DNA from: Hyphochytrium catenoides
Lineage: Eukaryota; Protista; Hyphochytriomycota
Direction: 5' to 3'
NCBI GenBank assembly: GCA_900088475.1
Contig: FLMG01004613.1
Span: 1 to 49,124, forward strand
Length of the DNA: 49,124 bases
The position numbers were made by a program, and so were the translations under genes. Of this stretch, positions 4,488 through 44,999 are shown one piece after another (position 1 is the stretch's first letter; the number at the start of each line of letters is the position of its first letter). The notes under the pieces were generated by a model. That model was given only the letters and a program-made list of their open reading frames with translations. It made no database searches and was not told the origin of the DNA.

Positions 4488-6502
4488 CTAGAGAGTAGAC
4501 AAGCTCGTCTCTCTCTCCGAGCCTGATCCCCTATCGTCCCGAGGTACAATCAGCTTGTACCGTATGTTCTGGAGCCAACCTCTATCGAACCGATTGACAA
4601 TTCTGCCAGCCCGGTCTCTCATATACTCATACTTCCTAAAGTTGATCATCTCGTTGGTGGTCACGCCTGAGAGCATGAGATACAGATGGAAGCCCAGCAT
4701 GTTCGCAACAAAGAGAACAAAGATCAGGTAGTTCACCCAGAGTATTATCATAGACCACGTCCAGCCATACTCTCTCATGTAGAGAAAAAGAGAGAAGTCC
4801 AGTTGGCATAGAGAGAAAATTGCGAAGAAGAGATAGCCAAAAAAGAACGGATAGTTCTTCCTCCCGACGCAGTTATCTATGTATGGACAATGGTGGTCGA
4901 ACTCGAAGACACAGCGCTTGCACATGCGACAGTGCTTGCTTCGCAATGGTCTCTGCACGTGACAGGTGTGACACAGAGGTCTCGATATGTCAACCTCCGC
5001 TAGTACGGCCGCGTCCTCCCCGGAAGAAGCCTCTCCAATGCGGCCAATGGCGTACTCATATTCTCTACGATGTTCTCCGGTTTTGGAGACGTACCCAGCT
5101 TCTGAATAGTGAGCCTTATAGAGAAAGCCATTCATCCCTAGGTTGGCGATAGCCACACAGAGCCAGTTGAAGACAGAGTATTCCAGTCCAGTGCTTAGAA
5201 GAGTCCAGTACAGATAGTAAGCAAAGATGGTCTCTGATATAACGATGTAGAAAGGCAAACGGCTGGTCTCCCACCAGCCCAGAGGATTCCACCGCTGCAC
5301 AGTAGCCTTTGAGCTCAAAAAGCGAGCTACTTCCCTACGTCCCGCTACCTTGGCAAGCTCTAAAGGAGTCCTCCCTTTTGCGTCCTTTACGCTGAGGTCC
5401 GAATCCACCTCGTTAACCAGATATTTCACGGTATCAACGTTGCCTCTCATCGCTGCAAGATGTAGAGGTGTCTGGCCAAAGTTATCGGGTGCATCTATTT
5501 TCAGTCCTAGGTACTGGAAGATAGAGACAACCTGCTCGTTGCCCTTGTAAGCCGCCCAATGAAGGGCCGTATCCCCGTCCGCGTCCACGAGCTTGACGTC
5601 AGCGCCTTTTTTTATGAGATAAAGAACTAGCAACGGGTGGCCATACTGGGCAGCAACCAAGGTCGGGCTCCTTCGTTTGACTGGATCCACCCTAGTGAAT
5701 GACAGATCACCCAAGAAAAGGGCCACCGAAGAGGAAGATCAGAGACGAGATGGAAAGTAGTCAAGCCTCTTACGGCACGAGTCGGCCCTAGAGATGCGGA
5801 GGAAAAAGAGAAAAACGAAGAGAGAAAGACGGAGATAGAATGAAAGAGAGACACAAGGAGAGAGAAAGCAAAAGAGGACAACGGGAAAAGTTCAAGGACA
5901 GTTATGACAGTAAATTTTAGAGAGATCTGGAAGACGGCGGAGCACCAAGTAGTCGCGAGGCGCGCAAGATAGCAGAAGAGGCTTAGAGCGCTGCTCAAAG
6001 CAAGAGAGAAGAAGTGATATGATGACGGGAGTGGAGAACGGGCCTACCGATTGGCATCTATTCCAGCAACAGAAACTAGAAAATGCAGGGCATTGAGACT
6101 GCCGCTGGCACAGGCCCAATGTATCGGATGCATGCCGACCTCATCCGGTGTGGGCTGGTCCACTTCTACCTTTTGCTCCCAGAGGATCCGAAGTACCGGT
6201 ACATTATCAGCCTGAGCAGCCCAGTGAGCCAGCGTATAGCCCTGTCTGTCGGTAGAGTGAAGAATTGCGGGCCCGCCAAGGTCTAGGAACTCCTTGAAGC
6301 GGGCGTGATCTCTCTGCTTCGTGGCTTCGAAAATGTCCATAGGAATTGGGGTCGCAGGCACTGGAGGGCAACAACTGCCATTTGCACCATTTGTCTGATG
6401 AGAGTGAGAGTGACGGGTGTGATGCTCTGGATGGTTTTGGTGGAAGTTGCTGCCCTCGGAATGTGAGCATTGAGAGCTGTGCTGGTGGCTGTGACCCAAC
6501 AT
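4488..6502 (-). CDS. Ankyrin-repeat DHHC protein S-acyltransferase (Akr1/ZDHHC17-like architecture); 2 exons
   Basis: Exons 6502-6048 and 5691-4488, phase-compatible GT-AG intron. Ankyrin motifs GYTLAHWAA, GMHPIHWAC, GDTALHWAA, GQTPLHLAA. Cys-rich domain [34 protein letters not shown]. TM helices and the TTNE motif follow. Confidence 0.95.
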
Positions 6503-27500: not shown

Positions 27501-30500
27501 GGATTGCAGCCTCTTTTAGCCCTGGCACATTCGGAGGATGTGGAAGTCCAGCAGGTGAGACAAGAAACATGTACTGACGAGATGCGACTGGATAGGCGAT
27601 GCCATACTTTGACGTGTTTCATGGCCCATGATGCTTTCTTTCGTCTTAGTTGGAGATGATGGCAATGTTGAACGCCCGTGGTTGTCACTAGGATCTAACT
27701 CCCTGTTCACGCTGCAGGAAGTTCTTTCGTGTCTATGCAACTTGTCTCTGTCCGGATGCATTGCTAACAATGCCTCGGACTTCATAGAGATCTGTAACAT
27801 CAGGTCGCTCATCAGCTTCCTCTGCTCAGCTGATACCACCTACAGACTCTTCGGAGCGGTAACACTTGGCAACTTAGCCGCTAACTTTGCCTATCATAAG
27901 AGGATCGTAGGTAAGGGAGTGTGGTAGGACACAAGGGGCAAAATAAAGGCGCTGACGCTACTATGGGACGGCAGGTCTAGCCTCTTACTCTCGTTCCGCC
28001 CGTTCACCACCATCCGCCTCTGTATCGTCTGTTGGCTCTTTCGAACAGGTGACGGAGCCATCGCTCCGCTCGTTACCATAGCAAACTCTGCGGACTTGGA
28101 GACCCAACGTGCTATAGCCTTTTCTCTCTGTAACTTGGCTGCCAATGAAGAACAACGCCCGTCAATAGTAGAGGAGGGAGGGCTCCCTACTCTCATCTCT
28201 CTGGCCTGTTCAGAGACGGCAGAGGACCAGAGGATCGCCATTTCTACATTGAGAGCCCTATCTGCTTGTAAGTGGGGTCTCACGTGCGCTGTATCAAAAG
28301 CCACTTCTGTTGCGCATTCCCTAGATCGCTACGTCAGAGGCCCCTGCGTTCTAGATCGACAGTTGAAAGTCTAAGAAGAAAGTTTGGTTTATACTTCCGG
28401 GATATCTTTCTCGAGTTGTTGCGCCTAAAGCAACTGCTTTGTGTGTCTCTCTATTTCCCTTAATGTAAACTTTGTACTTCTCTTTTGGCTGACCTTTATG
28501 CCGTCGTGCTCACGGCTGGCCGTCTCTCCATTCTCTCTCAAGCCCAAGAGGTTCGGCGACGTCTCGTATCGGAAGGCGTTCTTGAGGCGCTGATACTCGG
28601 AGCGGCTTGCCCTGAATTAGAAGTGAGAAGAGAAGTGGCATCTGCCTTGTACAATTTGTCCCTCAACGAGGCGAACAAGCTAGATATAGCGAATAATAGT
28701 TCGATGATAGCAGAGGTAGGGAAAGTACTTGCGTTTCAGGTTTCAGCTCATACGTCAACTCACCTGTCTTTATGTGACTTCCTATTCGCAGTTGATTAAC
28801 CTCTGCCTCACTGGAGACGTTGCAACTACGAGAGCGGCTGTAGGGGCCCTAGCAAATCTTTCGGAGAACTTTGATGCTCATGAGGCGATTGTTCTTCCTC
28901 GGGGGCTGAGGTTCTTGCAAGAGCTGGAGAGGGAAGAGGATATTTTGCTTAGAAGAGAGACTTTGAGGGCACTGGCTAATATGACGGGGAATATGAACTC
29001 GCAGGTAGAACTATCTTCTTGGCAAAAGAAACTTGTCACAGACGTACCACCTAACGTTTACACTTTCGAAGCACCATTCTGCTCTGTGGCTTCCTCGTCT
29101 CTCACGGTGTCATTGTCTACTTTCCTTGACGTTGGACTTCGGCATGCTCTAGATTTTGTCATATAATGGTTTAGCCATTGCTTACTAGGCGTCCTCTCTT
29201 TAGAGCTTTCATTTTCTCCCCTTAACACCGGTTATCCTCCTCAATGTAGGCCAGGGTCTTCAACGAGGAACTCCATAAGCTCCTCGTTTCCGCTTTAGCA
29301 CAGCCCGACGCTGTCTTAAGGCGCTTTGCGGCGGTTGGCGTATTCAATCTCTCTATTAACCGTGGAAACCATCATTTCCTAGCCCAGATCCCTCCTGTGG
29401 CTGGTGCTGGAGATGCAGTGCAAAGGCTGTGCAGACAGGTCAGGACAGGACCATTGATAGAACTGGATTAGGAACGCTTGCTTTGCCGATCTGCCGAACT
29501 ACTACATACGCTTTTGCCTCTCGCTCTCTTTATTTTCTCCTGCCCGTTCGGGTTGTGCTTCTTCGCACTCGGTCTGATGATTGTAAACTTTTCTCTGCCC
29601 TTAGAGGCAGTCTCATCCTCTCTCTCTCTCTCTCTCCCTCTCTCACAGTCTCACTCACATCTCATCCTCTCTTCTTTCTCTCTCGCTCTCAATTCCCGCC
29701 TTAAATATTTATCTCTATCAAACTCACACACCTTCTGTCCTCCCTCGCAAACAACATTACGTTAAGGTGGAGACGGAGACCGATTTGGAAGCTCTCAGAT
29801 ACGGGGTCCTTGCTCTAGGCTGCCTGGCAGTTACGCATGAGTATCACCCAGTTATGATGACCTTGGGGCTTCTTCCCTCCATCGGCCGAGCCATGACGTT
29901 TAAAGCAAGCGATGCCTCTCTGGAAGAGGCAACAGGCGCGGTAGATACGGATATGGTCGCTAAGCACAAGAAAGAAGGAGAAGGGACGGACCTCGAGTTA
30001 AAGTTCTATTGTGCCTACCTCCTCACAAAGCTCGCTATGGCGCCGTCTAATCATGAGGTGATAGGAAAAAGTGGTATCATGAGGGAGCTGATACTACTCG
30101 TGAATAAGGAAGAGAGGCTATCTCCCCGCTCTCAGGCGGTTGCGGCCCTTCGATGGCTAGCAGAGTACCCACCTAATCGATTGATTATGGTAGGGGAGGG
30201 GATCTTGGGAGCCCTCTCCTCTGCAGCAGTGGCTGCATCTCAGTCTTTGCACTCGGTTGCGAAGGACCCAGGAGGTCGAGAGATAGAAATCCAGAGAGAG
30301 ATAGCCGCGTGTCTCTGTTATATCACTCTCAGTCCTGAGAACAAAGCCCTCACCGCACAGAGTGAGATCATGGCTCCGCTTCTCGCTCTTTGCCAACATG
30401 ATGATGTAGAGGTTGCTCGTCAAGCATGTGGAGCTATTGCGAATATTTCAGAGGACTCATTGACGCACGTTAAGCTGGAAAAAGGGCTTCAGCTGCTGCA

Positions 30501-33500
30501 TAACTTCGTCTTCCTTATGCGTTCGAAGCATCTTCCCGTCTTTAGAGAGGCTTCTCGGCTTGTTTCCAACATGCTAACGACAGAGGAGTTGCATTCCATC
30601 TTTCTGAAGGAAGATGGCCTGCGATCCTTGCATAGAGTGACCAAAGTGGATGATGAGGAGTGCCAATATAACTGCTCCCTATCCTACCACAAACTCTCAG
30701 TCAATTCTGAAACCCACGGTGCGATAGTAACGGGTCTGTTGGAAGGTGCAGAGATGGAGGGAGAAAAGGCAGGAGGAGCAGGCGAGATCACAGGGACCAT
30801 GAGCTCATCGCTCTCGCCTAGCATCTCTTTGGTCTCTATTTATTCCCTTCTTTCTAAAAGCGACCCGCGGACTCAGCGCAATGCCGCCGCTGCTTTGCGT
30901 AACATATGCGCTAACCCTAGCTTTAAGCCTCATATTGCTTCTCACGGGGCACTTCAGGCAGTTATTGCTCTGGCAAGAGCCTCCGAGGTGGAACTGAAGT
31001 GTCTCGCCATTGCCGCTCTTCGGCATCTGGCGTTGAACCATAAGGTGCGGTCTAGGGGTGGTGAGAGAGCCCGAGATGAGCTTCTTACCTTCTGCAGTCT
31101 CGCCAACACGAGGATAGGATTCCTCTGTTCCCTCAAATGCTTGTCTGCAGATCACAAGTGCTAACACCTAATTCTGCATTTGTCATACTTCTTTTTCTGT
31201 TGTCTAGGTGAAACATCCGATTGTGGAAGCAGGTGGCCTAGATGTTCTCTTTGATTGCTCTTCGAATAGCAACCCGGACTTGCAAGCGCAATGTGCAGGA
31301 GCCATTGCTGCCTTGGCAGAGGAGACGAGAAACCAGGTCCAAATGGCACGGATGGAAAGAAGAGGCCTCGCGTCACTTCTTTCTCTGAGCCAGTCATCTA
31401 GTATTACCACTAGGGAGGATGTAACCCGTGCTTATGCCTCGCTCTCCTCCAACCCTGAGAACCAGATGGATGTGTTCCTTCCCACCGATTACGGGGCAAT
31501 CTTCTCTCTCTGCTCCACGAAGGAGAAGTATCTTAAGAGGGAAGAGGAAGGTGGTGCCCGAGAGGAGGCAGAGAGATTGAATGAGAGGTGTGGGACAGAC
31601 GGATCGATTGCCATCGGGAATCTGGCTGTGATAAGCAAGAACCAGTTGCAGCTTGTTAAGCATGGAGCACTAGAGGCTCTAGCTTTCCCTCTTCGCTCTA
31701 CATTTGCCTCCTGTCAACTTTATGCAGCTAGGGCCCTGTACCGTTTGGCCGCTCAGATTGACAATCACGACGCTATTCTAAAGGCCAAAGCCTTGCAGCC
31801 CCTCGTGGTTCTTCTAGGCAATAAGGCAAGTGGGAGTAAGGCGTAGCTGGGGCACAAAGCGGCACATCTCTTATGGCAGCTCTGTGTCAATAGATGATGT
31901 TTTTCTACGAATTGCGCTCAGCCTCATCTTCCAACATGTTTCTTTTGCGAACATTCGTACTTCCTGCCGTTCATTGTTTGGGCGTGCTTCTTATTAGGCG
32001 TCGACATGCTAAATAAGCCCGTTCTCATTTGGACTCGTGTCGCTTCAATCGCAGGATATCGAAGTGCAAAAGGCGGCCGTGATGGCTATCTGTAACCTCT
32101 CTACGTCTGTTGATACTCAGCTCCAAATAATGGAGTGCAGAGGGATCAGGTAGGTCTGCCTCATATCTCTCAGTTTTTTGGAGGAAGCTAAGCTATCCAC
32201 TGCTAACATTTCACGTTGTCCTCCCCTCCTTAGGCCCTTGATAGATATGACGAGAAGTAAGAGCCTCGAATGCAAGCGTTATGCAGCAATGACGCTTTGC
32301 AACCTCTCGACAAGTGTCTCCAACCAGGTAATAGCGCTAAGAGAACAAAGTACAGAGGGCGATGTAGTATCTGCGCTATAACACCTCAACGGTCTGCGCT
32401 AACATCTTACCTCTTTACTGTTGGGCAGGCGCATATAGTGACCGAAGGTGGACTTAAGGCGTTGATTTACCTCTCTCAGTCAACGGACCCCGACTGTCAG
32501 CGGTACGCCAGCATGACGCTGAGCAATGTTGCTGCCAACCGGCAAAATAGAGTTCCTGTTGTGGAAGCAGGAGGTGGGACCATCAAACTTACTCTTGAGA
32601 TAGATAGGAAATGGTGGCGAAGTGAAGAGGATGTATACTGGGAAAAATCCACTTCATTCCCTCTCTATCATCGCTGCTGCGTTTCGTAATCTTACTGAGG
32701 AGTGGTCTCACTTTCTCTTCATGCTTACCAGCACTGGAACCGTTAAGGGTGATGGCTGAGAGCAACGTTCTCGAGTGCAAGCGCTCGGCAGCGCTGGCTA
32801 TCTATAACATATCGTGCGCAGCAGCCAACCAGGTGTCCCTCGTATCTTCAGGTACTCCATTCTATCATGAGTTGTTTTTAGTCTGTCTAGCTACCTCCAT
32901 GGCCGATAAAATTTGTGTCCAGATGTGTCTGCTTCCTTGATCTTCAATGACCTTATACCGTTGTTCTTTAATGTTGTTGCTGTTGTAGGGGTTTCGAATG
33001 CCGTAATCGGCCTTGCAACATGCAAGGATGTGGACGCGAAGCGCTATGCGATCATGACCTTAGCCAACCTAGCTGGTAAGAAGCCTGCTGCGTCAACGAT
33101 CCCATTCTGGCATCCCCTAACTGTGCCTTTTGACGGTAGCGAACGAGGAAACACGGGCAGCAGCCACACGTAGCGGCGGGTTGCACTCCCTTATCACTGC
33201 ATGCAGAGATCCAGACATGGAATGCAGAAGATACGCAACAATTGCACTCTGCAACATTGCATGCAGTCCACAGACTCAGGTAAAGTAGCTAAGCTTCTCA
33301 GAGATATGGACTATATAAAAAAGTAGAGACTTGCGCGAGTGAGTGAAGCCCACCGCAAAGCAAGAGCATACGCGTCCTTTTGTTGAACCCTTGAACAAAT
33401 AAATGATTTCAGATGTTCTTGTCGTAGTGCTTGCTTTCTTGCTTTCCCAATGTAACCCCAAATGGCAGCCCATGGCCGGCTGGCCCAATCATATCGTTGT

Positions 33501-36500: not shown

Positions 36501-38369
36501 CCCATGCATGCTACGTCTCTAGCTGCTTTTGCATCTTTCTCTTTGAATGAGGAAAACAAAATGAAGCTTGTGCGCAACGGAGGCTTAGCTCAGATCATTA
36601 AGTCTACGTCACATCCTGACCTTGAGGTCAAAAGGGACTGCACCTTTGCCCTTGCCAACATCAGCGATAGTCCGGAGTTCCAAAATGACGTTGCTCGAGA
36701 GGGAGGGTTACAGACCCTTCTTGTCCTAGGCTGCCACGATGATGCCAGAGTTCAGAGGGATGCAGCAAGAGCACTTGCGTCGCTCTCTGTCTCGGAAGAG
36801 ATAAGACAGGTACTGACGTCAGAATAGCATTGGGGTATCTTTCCGTGCCTAGAACATTACCATTAATTTTACTGATTCTCGTTCATACGGTGCAGTTGAT
36901 GCTTGCAGCAGGTATCCTGCAGACCTTACTGAAGCTAGCTCGCTCTTTGGACGTCGCCAGCCAACGGTACTCAACTTTGGCTCTTTGTAATCTGGCATCT
37001 GGAGAGAACAAGAGGAAAATGATCGAAGAAGGTTTGGCGCCTCACCTAATCAACCTTACATGGCTCTCATGTACAGCATCTGTCCTCCAGTTAACTCTCT
37101 AGCAGTATCTGGTATGGGCCGATATATTCCGATTACTAAAGTCACGCTTCCTTGCAGGAGCCATACGTCCTCTAATGTTCCTTGCGAGGTTTCCGGATAC
37201 CGAGATCCAGCGATTCGCCTCCCTCGCCATTGGTGGGCTGAGTTTGGGAAATCACGGAGATAATAAGATGAAGATGGTTGAGGAAGGGGCTATTCGACCA
37301 CTGATTGAGCTTATTCGGTTCCCCAACTTTGATGTTCAACGCTGCGCGTCTTTGGCTCTAAATGCAATAGCTTTGGGACGGCTACAACCAACAAAGGTCA
37401 ACATCATGCAAGAAGATGGTAAGCTTTGAGTGCATAGATCAGAGCGCGGACACTAAAAACACCTTACCCAGTCCGAGGAGGGAGAAGGCAAAGAGACTGC
37501 TAGAGGGATGAATACAATCTTGCTAACCCATGATCCTTTTCCCTGCGCAGGCCTATTACCCTTGTTGGGTCTAGCCGCTGCGGAAGACGTGGAGTGCTCT
37601 CGGGCCGCACTCTATTGCCTGGGGTCGTTGGCGGAGAATACCGCCTGCAGAGCTAAGCTGGTAGAGCTAGGCGCGCTGATCACAGTTATTACTAAGGGCA
37701 ATTCGTGTTCAGATGTTGAAATCCAACGCAGCGTTGGTTATTTCCTTGCGCTTGTGGCACAACAGCAGGAGTATCATGATGACTTCGCCCGGGAGGGTGG
37801 CATCGAGCTCCTCGTATCGTTAGCGTCAATGGAAGATGTTGAATGTCAAGAGTATGCGACCTTTTCGCTCGCTCATCTTGCGAGCAACAGAGACTATCAA
37901 AGCAAGCTTGCCCAGGCCGGGGCATTGAGACCTATTATTGCTATAATGTCCGTCAATTCTGAACCTCGCCACTACGCTGGTCTGGCGCTACTGAAGTTGG
38001 CCGACAATTACGAGAACCATCTGAAGATATTAGAAGAAGGTCAGTTCGAAGAACCATCGATTATTTGTCAAAAGGGGACTTTTTCTAACACTTTGATTCT
38101 ACTCTTCAGGTGGAATCCAAGCTCTTTTGCGACTGGCGCGAGCTCGATCAACAGACGAAGAGATGCAGTACAAAGCAGCAATGAGCGTGGGTAACCTGGC
38201 TGCGAATGCAGTGAAGCTTCTACCCAAACAGACACTATCTGGTCCTGGCGCCGCCGATATTGGCGCCGGTGCAGCGCGAATGAGCCGGTTAGCAGCTCCC
38301 CAAGGCTTGAAGCGTGGCAAGGAGCGCGCTGCCGAGTATGTAGACAAGAATGCGCCCAAAGAAGTTTAG
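18543..38369 (+). CDS. Giant armadillo-repeat protein ('Vac8-like' class), ~50 exons, roughly 3,700 aa by estimate
   Basis: Continuous series of ARM repeats (e.g. IVEEGGLQPMISL-S-D-DVHHQAAAALRGLA, EVQREAGRALANLAAN) running from MAKVLETLIAKGRR (18543) to DKNAPKEV* (38369). I counted 49 splice donors by hand, and the junctions I checked were phase-compatible. Confidence 0.9.
25975..26023 (+). repeat. 24-bp direct tandem duplication in an intron
   Basis: tctcttgcggggtttagagttatt occurs twice consecutively. Confidence 0.85.
31826..32054 (+). other. GC-AG intron in the giant ARM gene
   Basis: AAG|GCAAGT ... GCAG|GAT ATC GAA GTG restores LLGNK-DIEVQK. The nearby GT donors are out of phase. Confidence 0.8.
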
Positions 38370-44160: not shown

Positions 44161-44212
44161 GAGAGAGATAGAAAGAGAACGAGAGAGAGATAGAAAGAAA
44201 GGGAGAGAGAGA

Positions 44213-44244
<32 letters not shown>

Positions 44245-44245: not shown

Positions 44246-44383
44246 AACAATCATAAGAACAGACAATCATCTTCAACAATGACCGAGCTACACGACATTG
44301 CCTCGGTACCAAGGGCCTCAGTTCTGTGCTCATCGAAAGGACACAAGACCAACTTTCGTGGACATGCCAGGCTCTATGGAAGG

Positions 44384-44390
44384 AAAAAAA
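44384..44390 (-). terminator. RNA polymerase III oligo-dT terminator of the tRNA gene
   Basis: T7 on the minus strand, 4 nt downstream of the discriminator base. Confidence 0.85.
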
Positions 44391-44394
44391 GTCA

Positions 44395-44467
44395 TGTTCA
44401 TGCCCGGAATTGAACCGGGGACCTACCGTACGTCAAACGGTCGTGATAACCACTACACCACACGAAC
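44395..44467 (-). tRNA. trnV-GAC: tRNA-Val, anticodon GAC, intronless, 73 nt
   Basis: Reverse complement: GTTCGTG TG GTGTAGTGGTTATCAC G ACCGT TTGACGT ACGGT AGGTC CCCGG TTCAATT CCGGG CATGAAC A. It has a 7-bp acceptor stem (one G-U), perfect anticodon and T stems, A-box/B-box, discriminator A73 and no encoded CCA. Confidence 0.95.
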
Positions 44468-44999
44468 ATTGAAGCTGATAGAACCGATATAATACTCTAA
44501 CATAAACCAAGCCGCAATAAAGCAGGTGTCCAACTGTTGACGATTGAAGTTGATGGATCAGCGCATCAGCGCTTGTGGAGGAGGGGTCTTTCTTCTTAGA
44601 GATCTCACAGCTTGGCAGGCACGTCTGCTGAGCAAGTCTGCCGTACTTGGGGAGCTAGCTGAGGATGGGAGCCCTAGATCTCACGTATAGCTATCACATA
44701 CACTCTCTCACTCAGATCTCCGTTGTCTCGGATACGGCAAAGATGCGGTTCAAGAAGCAGACTCATCCCCAGTCAGGGAAAGTCTTACTCGAGTCTCAAC
44801 CGGTAACAAGGGTCTATGAGAGTTATTCTTCCCGTCACCCTGGGCTGTCTGTTCATATTCTAGCTCCTCGCGCAGCGCTGAGATATTTGAGGCCCAAGGG
44901 ACAGTCTAGGATACTTTCAAGGAGCAATCGGCAAGGCGAGAGAGAGTTTCTAAAGAACCATTCAGTTAGAGGATATGTACAAGCTAAAGCTATCTATCA

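Follow-up and report, generated by a model that had tools for sequence, protein, structure and literature searches.

Does the nuclear genome of a hyphochytrid keep a working valine tRNA with G34 at the wobble position, and does this tRNA take the place of the inosine-based decoder used by most eukaryotes? That I34 tRNAs have taken over from G34 tRNAs in eight codon boxes counts as a nearly universal, unexplained hallmark of eukaryotes, and engineered G34 tRNAs have been described as toxic miscoders. A sequence-only reading of the window, by which we mean the whole 49,124-nt stretch of DNA analyzed here, had singled out a tRNA-Val with anticodon GAC and stated that eukaryotes avoid G34 in the Val box. 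The statement holds as a rule, but there are published exceptions in Entamoeba, Trichomonas and, for leucine, Saccharomyces.

In the whole window ARAGORN found exactly one tRNA, which it placed on the minus strand at 44394-44468 and called tRNA-Val (GAC). Rfam RF00005 matched the same locus (44467..44395) across model positions 1-71 of 71, scoring 62.8 bits against a gathering score of 29 (E = 2.3e-11), which is far beyond chance. The span originally given for the gene, 44384-44467, does cover the tRNA, its 4-nt trailer and the T7 run, but the strand, which is minus, was not named. The features of the gene and its surroundings are collected in Table 1.

Table 1. Coordinates of the tRNA-Val(GAC) gene, its predicted elements, and other features of the window.
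Feature	Position	Strand	Basis
tRNA-Val(GAC) gene, 73 nt, without intron, without encoded CCA	44395..44467	-	ARAGORN, Rfam, sequence, unitig in two runs
Anticodon G34 A35 C36 (G34 = window 44434)	44432..44434	-	Sequence and ARAGORN
7-nt anticodon loop, U32-U38	44430-44436	-	Sequence
A-box-like segment TGGTGTAGTGG, tRNA positions 8-18	44450..44460	-	Predicted from the Pol III type-2 promoter consensus
B-box-like segment GGTTCAATTCC, tRNA positions 52-62	44406..44416	-	Predicted from the consensus GGTTCRANNCC
T7 run, Pol III terminator, 4 nt past A73	44384..44390	-	Sequence; T6-T8 at other copies
TATA-like TATTATAT, -27 to -20 upstream of the tRNA	44487..44494	-	Sequence; putative
Flank segment with a second version (29 substitutions and 8 gaps; the other version equals the window)	44469-44629		Source contigs, similar depth
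Flank segment with two versions, 6 substitutions apart	44798-44900		Source contigs, similar depth
Imperfect (GA)n microsatellite, ~84 nt	44161-44244
Ankyrin-repeat DHHC palmitoyltransferase exon and armadillo-repeat ORFs	4488-5726; 29767-31846; 37508-38194	-; +; +

The acceptor stem (GTTCGTG/CATGAAC) includes one G.U pair, the D arm reads GTGT/AGTGGTTA/TCAC, and an anticodon stem of ACCGT/ACGGT encloses the loop TTGACGT, that is, U32 U33 G34 A35 C36 G37 U38, exactly as had been claimed. These are joined by the variable loop AGGTC, a T arm of CCCGG-TTCAATT-CCGGG and the discriminator A73. In the D stem, 13-22 is the lone non-standard pair, and it recurs in the other eukaryote-type Val tRNAs that were aligned. 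Beyond A73 the minus strand continues with TGAC and then seven T, and no CCA is encoded. The intact cloverleaf, eukaryotic Val scaffold, A73, lack of CCA and T7 run described in the earlier reading were all borne out by the sequence, Rfam and ARAGORN. Minimum free energy folding of the tRNA was not distinctive (z = -1.1). This is usual for tRNAs, for which the covariance model is the relevant test.

The sequence also contains A35, C36 and A73, which together form the identity set of valyl-tRNA synthetase (ValRS). The layout fits that of a Pol III gene, with internal A and B boxes, no encoded CCA and an oligo-T terminator. Upstream of the gene, the TATA-like TATTATAT is a putative promoter element that would be weak and optional, and its base 44493 is altered in the second version of the flank seen in the contigs. 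Long ORFs are few in the window, whose G+C content is about 50%. The best matches to an ankyrin-repeat DHHC palmitoyltransferase exon are oomycete proteins at only 43-45% identity, several armadillo-repeat ORFs may be paralogous neighbours, and the (GA)n microsatellite lies ~150 nt downstream of the tRNA terminator.

We aligned the window tRNA with E. coli valV and valW (NC_000913.3) and with eukaryote-type Val tRNAs from metagenome contigs. It was 71-80% identical to the eukaryote-type environmental tRNAs, compared with 48-51% to valV and valW. The D arm GTGTAGTGGTTATCAC and the variable/T-stem segment AGGTC-CCCGG-TTC were the same in the eukaryote-type environmental tRNAs. A pattern combining this body with GAC had no match among 185,579 bacterial and archaeal genomes (one per species) and none in IMG/VR. 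The same pattern matched six contigs in JGI metagenomes, and G37 or U38 occurred in none of them. Given the lack of prokaryotic and IMG/VR matches and the low identity to E. coli, we rejected a bacterial, organellar or viral origin. An organellar or bacterial tRNA-Val is at odds with a body unlike that of valV/valW, a different D arm, the missing CCA and the 0 of 185,579 genomes matched, while a giant-virus origin is unsupported by the search of IMG/VR.

According to the published genome of H. catenoides, the organism is diploid, was sequenced in two GAIIx runs plus HiSeq at 312-610x coverage and has 3.6 introns per gene. The runs in which the stretch occurs, two from 2011 and one from 2017, agree with that data set, so the source is very probably this species; none of the runs listed as containing the stretch is recorded as RNA. 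No plastid genome was found, and the genome is described as having 'a full set of tRNAs', with Val(GAC) unmentioned. The reported lack of a plastid genome and the null result across prokaryotic genomes both uphold the view that the gene has a eukaryotic Val body and is not an organellar insertion.

We compared assembled Logan contigs and unitigs of four runs over window positions 44250-44900. Two of these runs (X1 and X2) are from the source organism, and two (X6 and X10) are from two other labelled organisms, here B and D. In both X1 and X2, a single unbranched unitig of 75 nt covered positions 44394-44468 without any difference. In X1 it had a depth of 1176, against about 290-415 for single-locus flanks, and in X2 it was 116 against 30-46. 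A tRNA depth about three times that of its flanks in both runs implies about three identical loci. The G34 call itself was confirmed insofar as the contigs of X1 and X2 held no other letter at the anticodon, although rare variants are possible behind assembled contigs.

The flanks of these copies differ sharply. On the 3' side, a second unitig of the source organism departs at once into unrelated sequence, which again includes a T-run. The 5' flank exists in a second version (depth 199 against 215), with 29 substitutions and 8 gaps in ~160 nt. This second upstream flank is only ~81% alike, and its differences set in at base -2, although the tRNA next to it is unchanged. If 18% of sites had diverged, 73 sites would all stay unchanged with a probability of ~5e-7. 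An identical tRNA beside diverged flanks speaks for purifying selection or gene conversion. Furthermore, organisms B and D carry the same tRNA (73/73 nt identical) in three different, unrelated flanks, each followed by T6-T8. The sequence common to the copies is just the 75 nt at 44394-44468, beyond which the flanks are unlike. This is the pattern of a tRNA-Val(GAC) kept by purifying selection, possibly aided by gene conversion within the genome. A lone mutated copy was rejected on the basis of the threefold depth and the identity across flanks and organisms.

Hence, the locus is an intact, selectively kept nuclear tRNA-Val(GAC) gene on a eukaryote-type cytosolic body. The earlier argument that it is not a point-mutated pseudogene proved sound, given the intact cloverleaf, about three identical loci and 73/73 identity in two other organisms. 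Its phrase 'selected, retuned' G34 decoder on a eukaryotic body can be kept as far as it describes a maintained gene, for which the copies, the diverged flanks and the other organisms speak.

Some further observations concern the flanks and the distribution of the tRNA. The two versions of each variable flank segment in Table 1 may be strongly diverged diploid alleles or a duplicated segment, and two haplotype-like unitigs in the source runs have a summed depth near 400. Further, 5-8% of the query words recur in 15 metagenome runs and in X9, another labelled run. The 15 metagenomes came from soil, rhizosphere, sludge, freshwater, phyllosphere and air. In X6 and X10, both with only the identical tRNA, the share of query words was 0.07. 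The metagenome runs and X9 probably hold the same tRNA alone and, since their share equals that of X6 and X10, the clade that owns this tRNA may be environmentally widespread.

The anticodon loop sets the gene apart. E. coli valV and valW both have the loop UUGACAU, as the earlier comparison had it (UU-GAC-AU), and the window loop UUGACGU differs from it only at position 37. Loops of eukaryote-type environmental Val(GAC) tRNAs read CUGACAC or UUGACAC. G37 had been called atypical for Val, and we agree: U38 together with G37 was unusual among the eukaryote-type examples compared, and G37 was rare in the prokaryotic and environmental samples checked. When prokaryotes were searched with UUGACGU plus a T-arm motif, four of the first 120 matches listed were real Val(GAC) tRNAs and the rest were mostly chance. 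These four (L020, L105, L121 and L125) are bacterial Val(GAC) tRNAs with the loop UUGACGU, including G37, on bacterial bodies; their owners are a gammaproteobacterial MAG, a member of Patescibacteria, a member of Saccharibacteria and Yeguia hominis.

The six JGI metagenome contigs carry eukaryote-type Val(GAC) genes with other loops. Four of them (L001, L002, L005 and L006; JAAUX*/JAAUY*) have the ordinary loop CU-GAC-AC and are 93-97% alike over 0.4-1.6 kb, so they represent either a single locus shared by related organisms or a long repeat. The same loop occurs in a eukaryote-type Val(GAC) on an unrelated 12-kb contig (L004:8586-8658). A further contig (L003:1-1433, Ga0302320_10518477) is from an environmental eukaryote, has 39% G+C, and consists of tandem ~160-bp units with one Val tRNA each. 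The anticodon in these units is TAC, CAC or GAC on one common body with the loop UU-NAC-AC, and some units are visibly decayed. Because U32 is found in the Val(CAC) and Val(UAC) units of this array as well, U32 need not be tied to G34. The joint change of positions 32 and 38 with 34 that the earlier reading put forward is a conjecture.

Bases 32 and 38 have been linked to the tolerance of G34. Pernod et al. (PMC7293025) found G34 tRNAs of four-codon boxes to be nearly absent from eukaryotes and showed that engineered human G34 versions of Ala, Pro, Thr and Leu tRNAs are toxic, with a Watson-Crick 32-38 pair relieving toxicity for Ala, Pro and Leu. Val was not among the tRNAs tested in that study, and its survey flagged the anticodons GGN and GAG. 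The U32/U38 of the hyphochytrid tRNA is a U.U juxtaposition, not a Watson-Crick pair, so the gene departs from the simple 32-38 rule of Pernod et al.

How might such a tRNA work? RNA polymerase III would transcribe the gene from its internal A and B boxes and terminate at T7, and valyl-tRNA synthetase would charge the product by way of A35, C36 and A73. The charged tRNA would form Watson-Crick pairs with GUC and decode GUU through a G.U wobble. Because G34 would read both codons, A34-to-I34 editing by ADAT2/3 would not be needed. G37 is a probable target of Trm5, which would turn it into m1G37, while U32 and U38, as in E. coli tRNA-Val(GAC), may tune the strength with which the loop binds its codons. 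We give slightly better than even chances to the full reading, in which the locus is a functional nuclear Pol III gene for a cytosolic elongator tRNA-Val(GAC), present at about three identical loci in a diploid stramenopile and acting as its sole purine-34 Val tRNA.

The last part of this reading depends on Val(AAC). According to a rule restated by Ehrlich et al. (PMC8007984), a given amino acid has either A34 or G34 isoacceptors but not both, across phylogeny. This rule makes us lean towards an absence of Val(AAC), with GAC as the only purine-34 Val tRNA of the organism, and for the Val box we consider that absence somewhat more probable than its opposite. Entamoeba, with Val(GAC), and Saccharomyces, with Leu(GAG), would then be parallel cases. 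Among the source unitigs, no sequence shared a 30-mer with the tRNA and then diverged, and no contig was 80-99% alike on the tRNA. The unbranched unitig therefore leaves no room for a same-body AAC twin, but a more diverged Val(AAC) would escape such a comparison. Phytophthora infestans, from the sister group, has been reported with 85 Val(AAC) genes, from which it follows that the common ancestor probably used A34 for Val. Genes for Ile(AAU), Leu(AAG) and Ser(AGA) are also reported from P. infestans, and A34 genes in several boxes make a broad loss of inosine decoding unlikely. Codon use in five ORFs of the window showed no lean to GUC (GUU 0.33, GUC 0.21) and was uninformative.

A functional gene could also be a redundant one. 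Val(GAC) would then operate alongside Val(AAC) with I34 as an extra decoder of GUY, for example by boosting GUC, and inosine decoding would remain intact. Abundant Val(AAC) genes reported in oomycetes, the closest sequenced relatives (43-45% protein identity), are in keeping with redundancy, as are the modest number of three loci and the L003 array, whose Val(CAC) and Val(UAC) units show how readily a point change yields GAC. We nevertheless judge redundancy unlikely, if with appreciable probability, given the reported mutual exclusion of A34 and G34 isoacceptors (PMC8007984) and the exclusion of a same-body AAC twin by the unitigs, which still allows a diverged Val(AAC).

Readings in which the tRNA has no ordinary role in translation fare worse. 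Most predicted Val-GAC genes of rust fungi lie within LTR elements, as parts of Helenus elements, and by analogy the hyphochytrid locus might be a silent or decaying copy that takes no part in translation, whether as a pseudogene or as a tRNA-like module within a mobile element (SINE or LTR). The hyphochytrid gene is unlike those of rust fungi: its copies cease to resemble each other 1 nt beyond either end of the gene, which means that it does not sit inside a larger repeat, and each copy has its own oligo-T terminator. A cloverleaf intact in all arms at 62.8 bits and 73/73 identity across diverged flanks and organisms also argue against decay, making a silent copy very improbable. We assign still lower probability to a specialised tRNA, whether imported into mitochondria to fill a gap in their tRNA set or used outside translation, for example as a retroelement primer. 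In favor of this, U32 and U38 are loop bases of a bacterial Val(GAC), but a GAC tRNA alone would be unable to read all four Val codons of an organelle. Imported tRNAs are normally ordinary cytosolic species, which also counts against a specialised imported tRNA.

The reading that we favor, a working decoder of the Val box, can be compared with known systems. In Entamoeba histolytica and E. dispar, VF arrays hold Val-GAC with Phe-GAA and WI arrays hold Ile-AAT. As in the hyphochytrid, Val G34 genes in Entamoeba are nuclear and multi-copy, and A34 is kept there in another box (Ile-AAT). However, Entamoeba belongs to Amoebozoa rather than to stramenopiles, and its Val-GAC genes stand in long tandem arrays, whereas the hyphochytrid genes are dispersed singly among unrelated flanks. 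In Trichomonas vaginalis, Val-GAC and Ile-GAT are listed as parents of sequenced small tRNA fragments. Trichomonas likewise has G34 tRNAs where most eukaryotes rely on inosine, and its Val-GAC is known at the RNA level, whereas the hyphochytrid Val(GAC) is known from the gene alone.

Saccharomyces has Leu(GAG) and lacks Leu(AAG), and its Leu(GAG) is dispensable with a debated role (PMC8007984). The tRNA-Leu(GAG) of Saccharomyces and Candida glabrata resembles the proposed hyphochytrid case in that one box switched from A34 to G34 and other boxes keep inosine. It differs in its amino acid and its dispensability, and it contrasts with the hyphochytrid gene, whose copy number and conservation point to a working decoder. 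The anticodon, U32, U33 and U38 of the hyphochytrid tRNA recur in E. coli valV and valW, but the E. coli genes differ in their bacterial D arm, their A37 and the CCA that they encode, whereas the hyphochytrid tRNA has G37 and no encoded CCA. Judged from these sequences, the likeness is one of function and not of family membership. The tRNAs of Pernod et al. also place G34 in a four-codon-box tRNA with a eukaryotic body and tie bases 32 and 38 to tolerance. Those were engineered Ala, Pro, Thr, Ser and Leu tRNAs rescued by a Watson-Crick 32-38 pair, whereas here a natural, conserved Val tRNA has U32/U38 and G37. Our search found no report of Val(GAC) in hyphochytrids or other stramenopiles; the A34/G34 surveys by Rafels-Ybern et al. 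lay outside that search.

Single-box G34 is already documented in Entamoeba, Trichomonas and Saccharomyces, so the gene changes no principle. We tentatively propose, at clearly less than even probability, that the Val box alone is without inosine in hyphochytrids and the other carriers of this tRNA, and that the U32/m1G37/U38 loop is a natural alternative to a Watson-Crick 32-38 pair. What sequence context makes G34 tolerable can be learned from every natural lineage in which a G34 tRNA of such a box is conserved. The hyphochytrid gene extends these lineages to the stramenopiles, with U32, G37 and U38 as its unusual loop bases.
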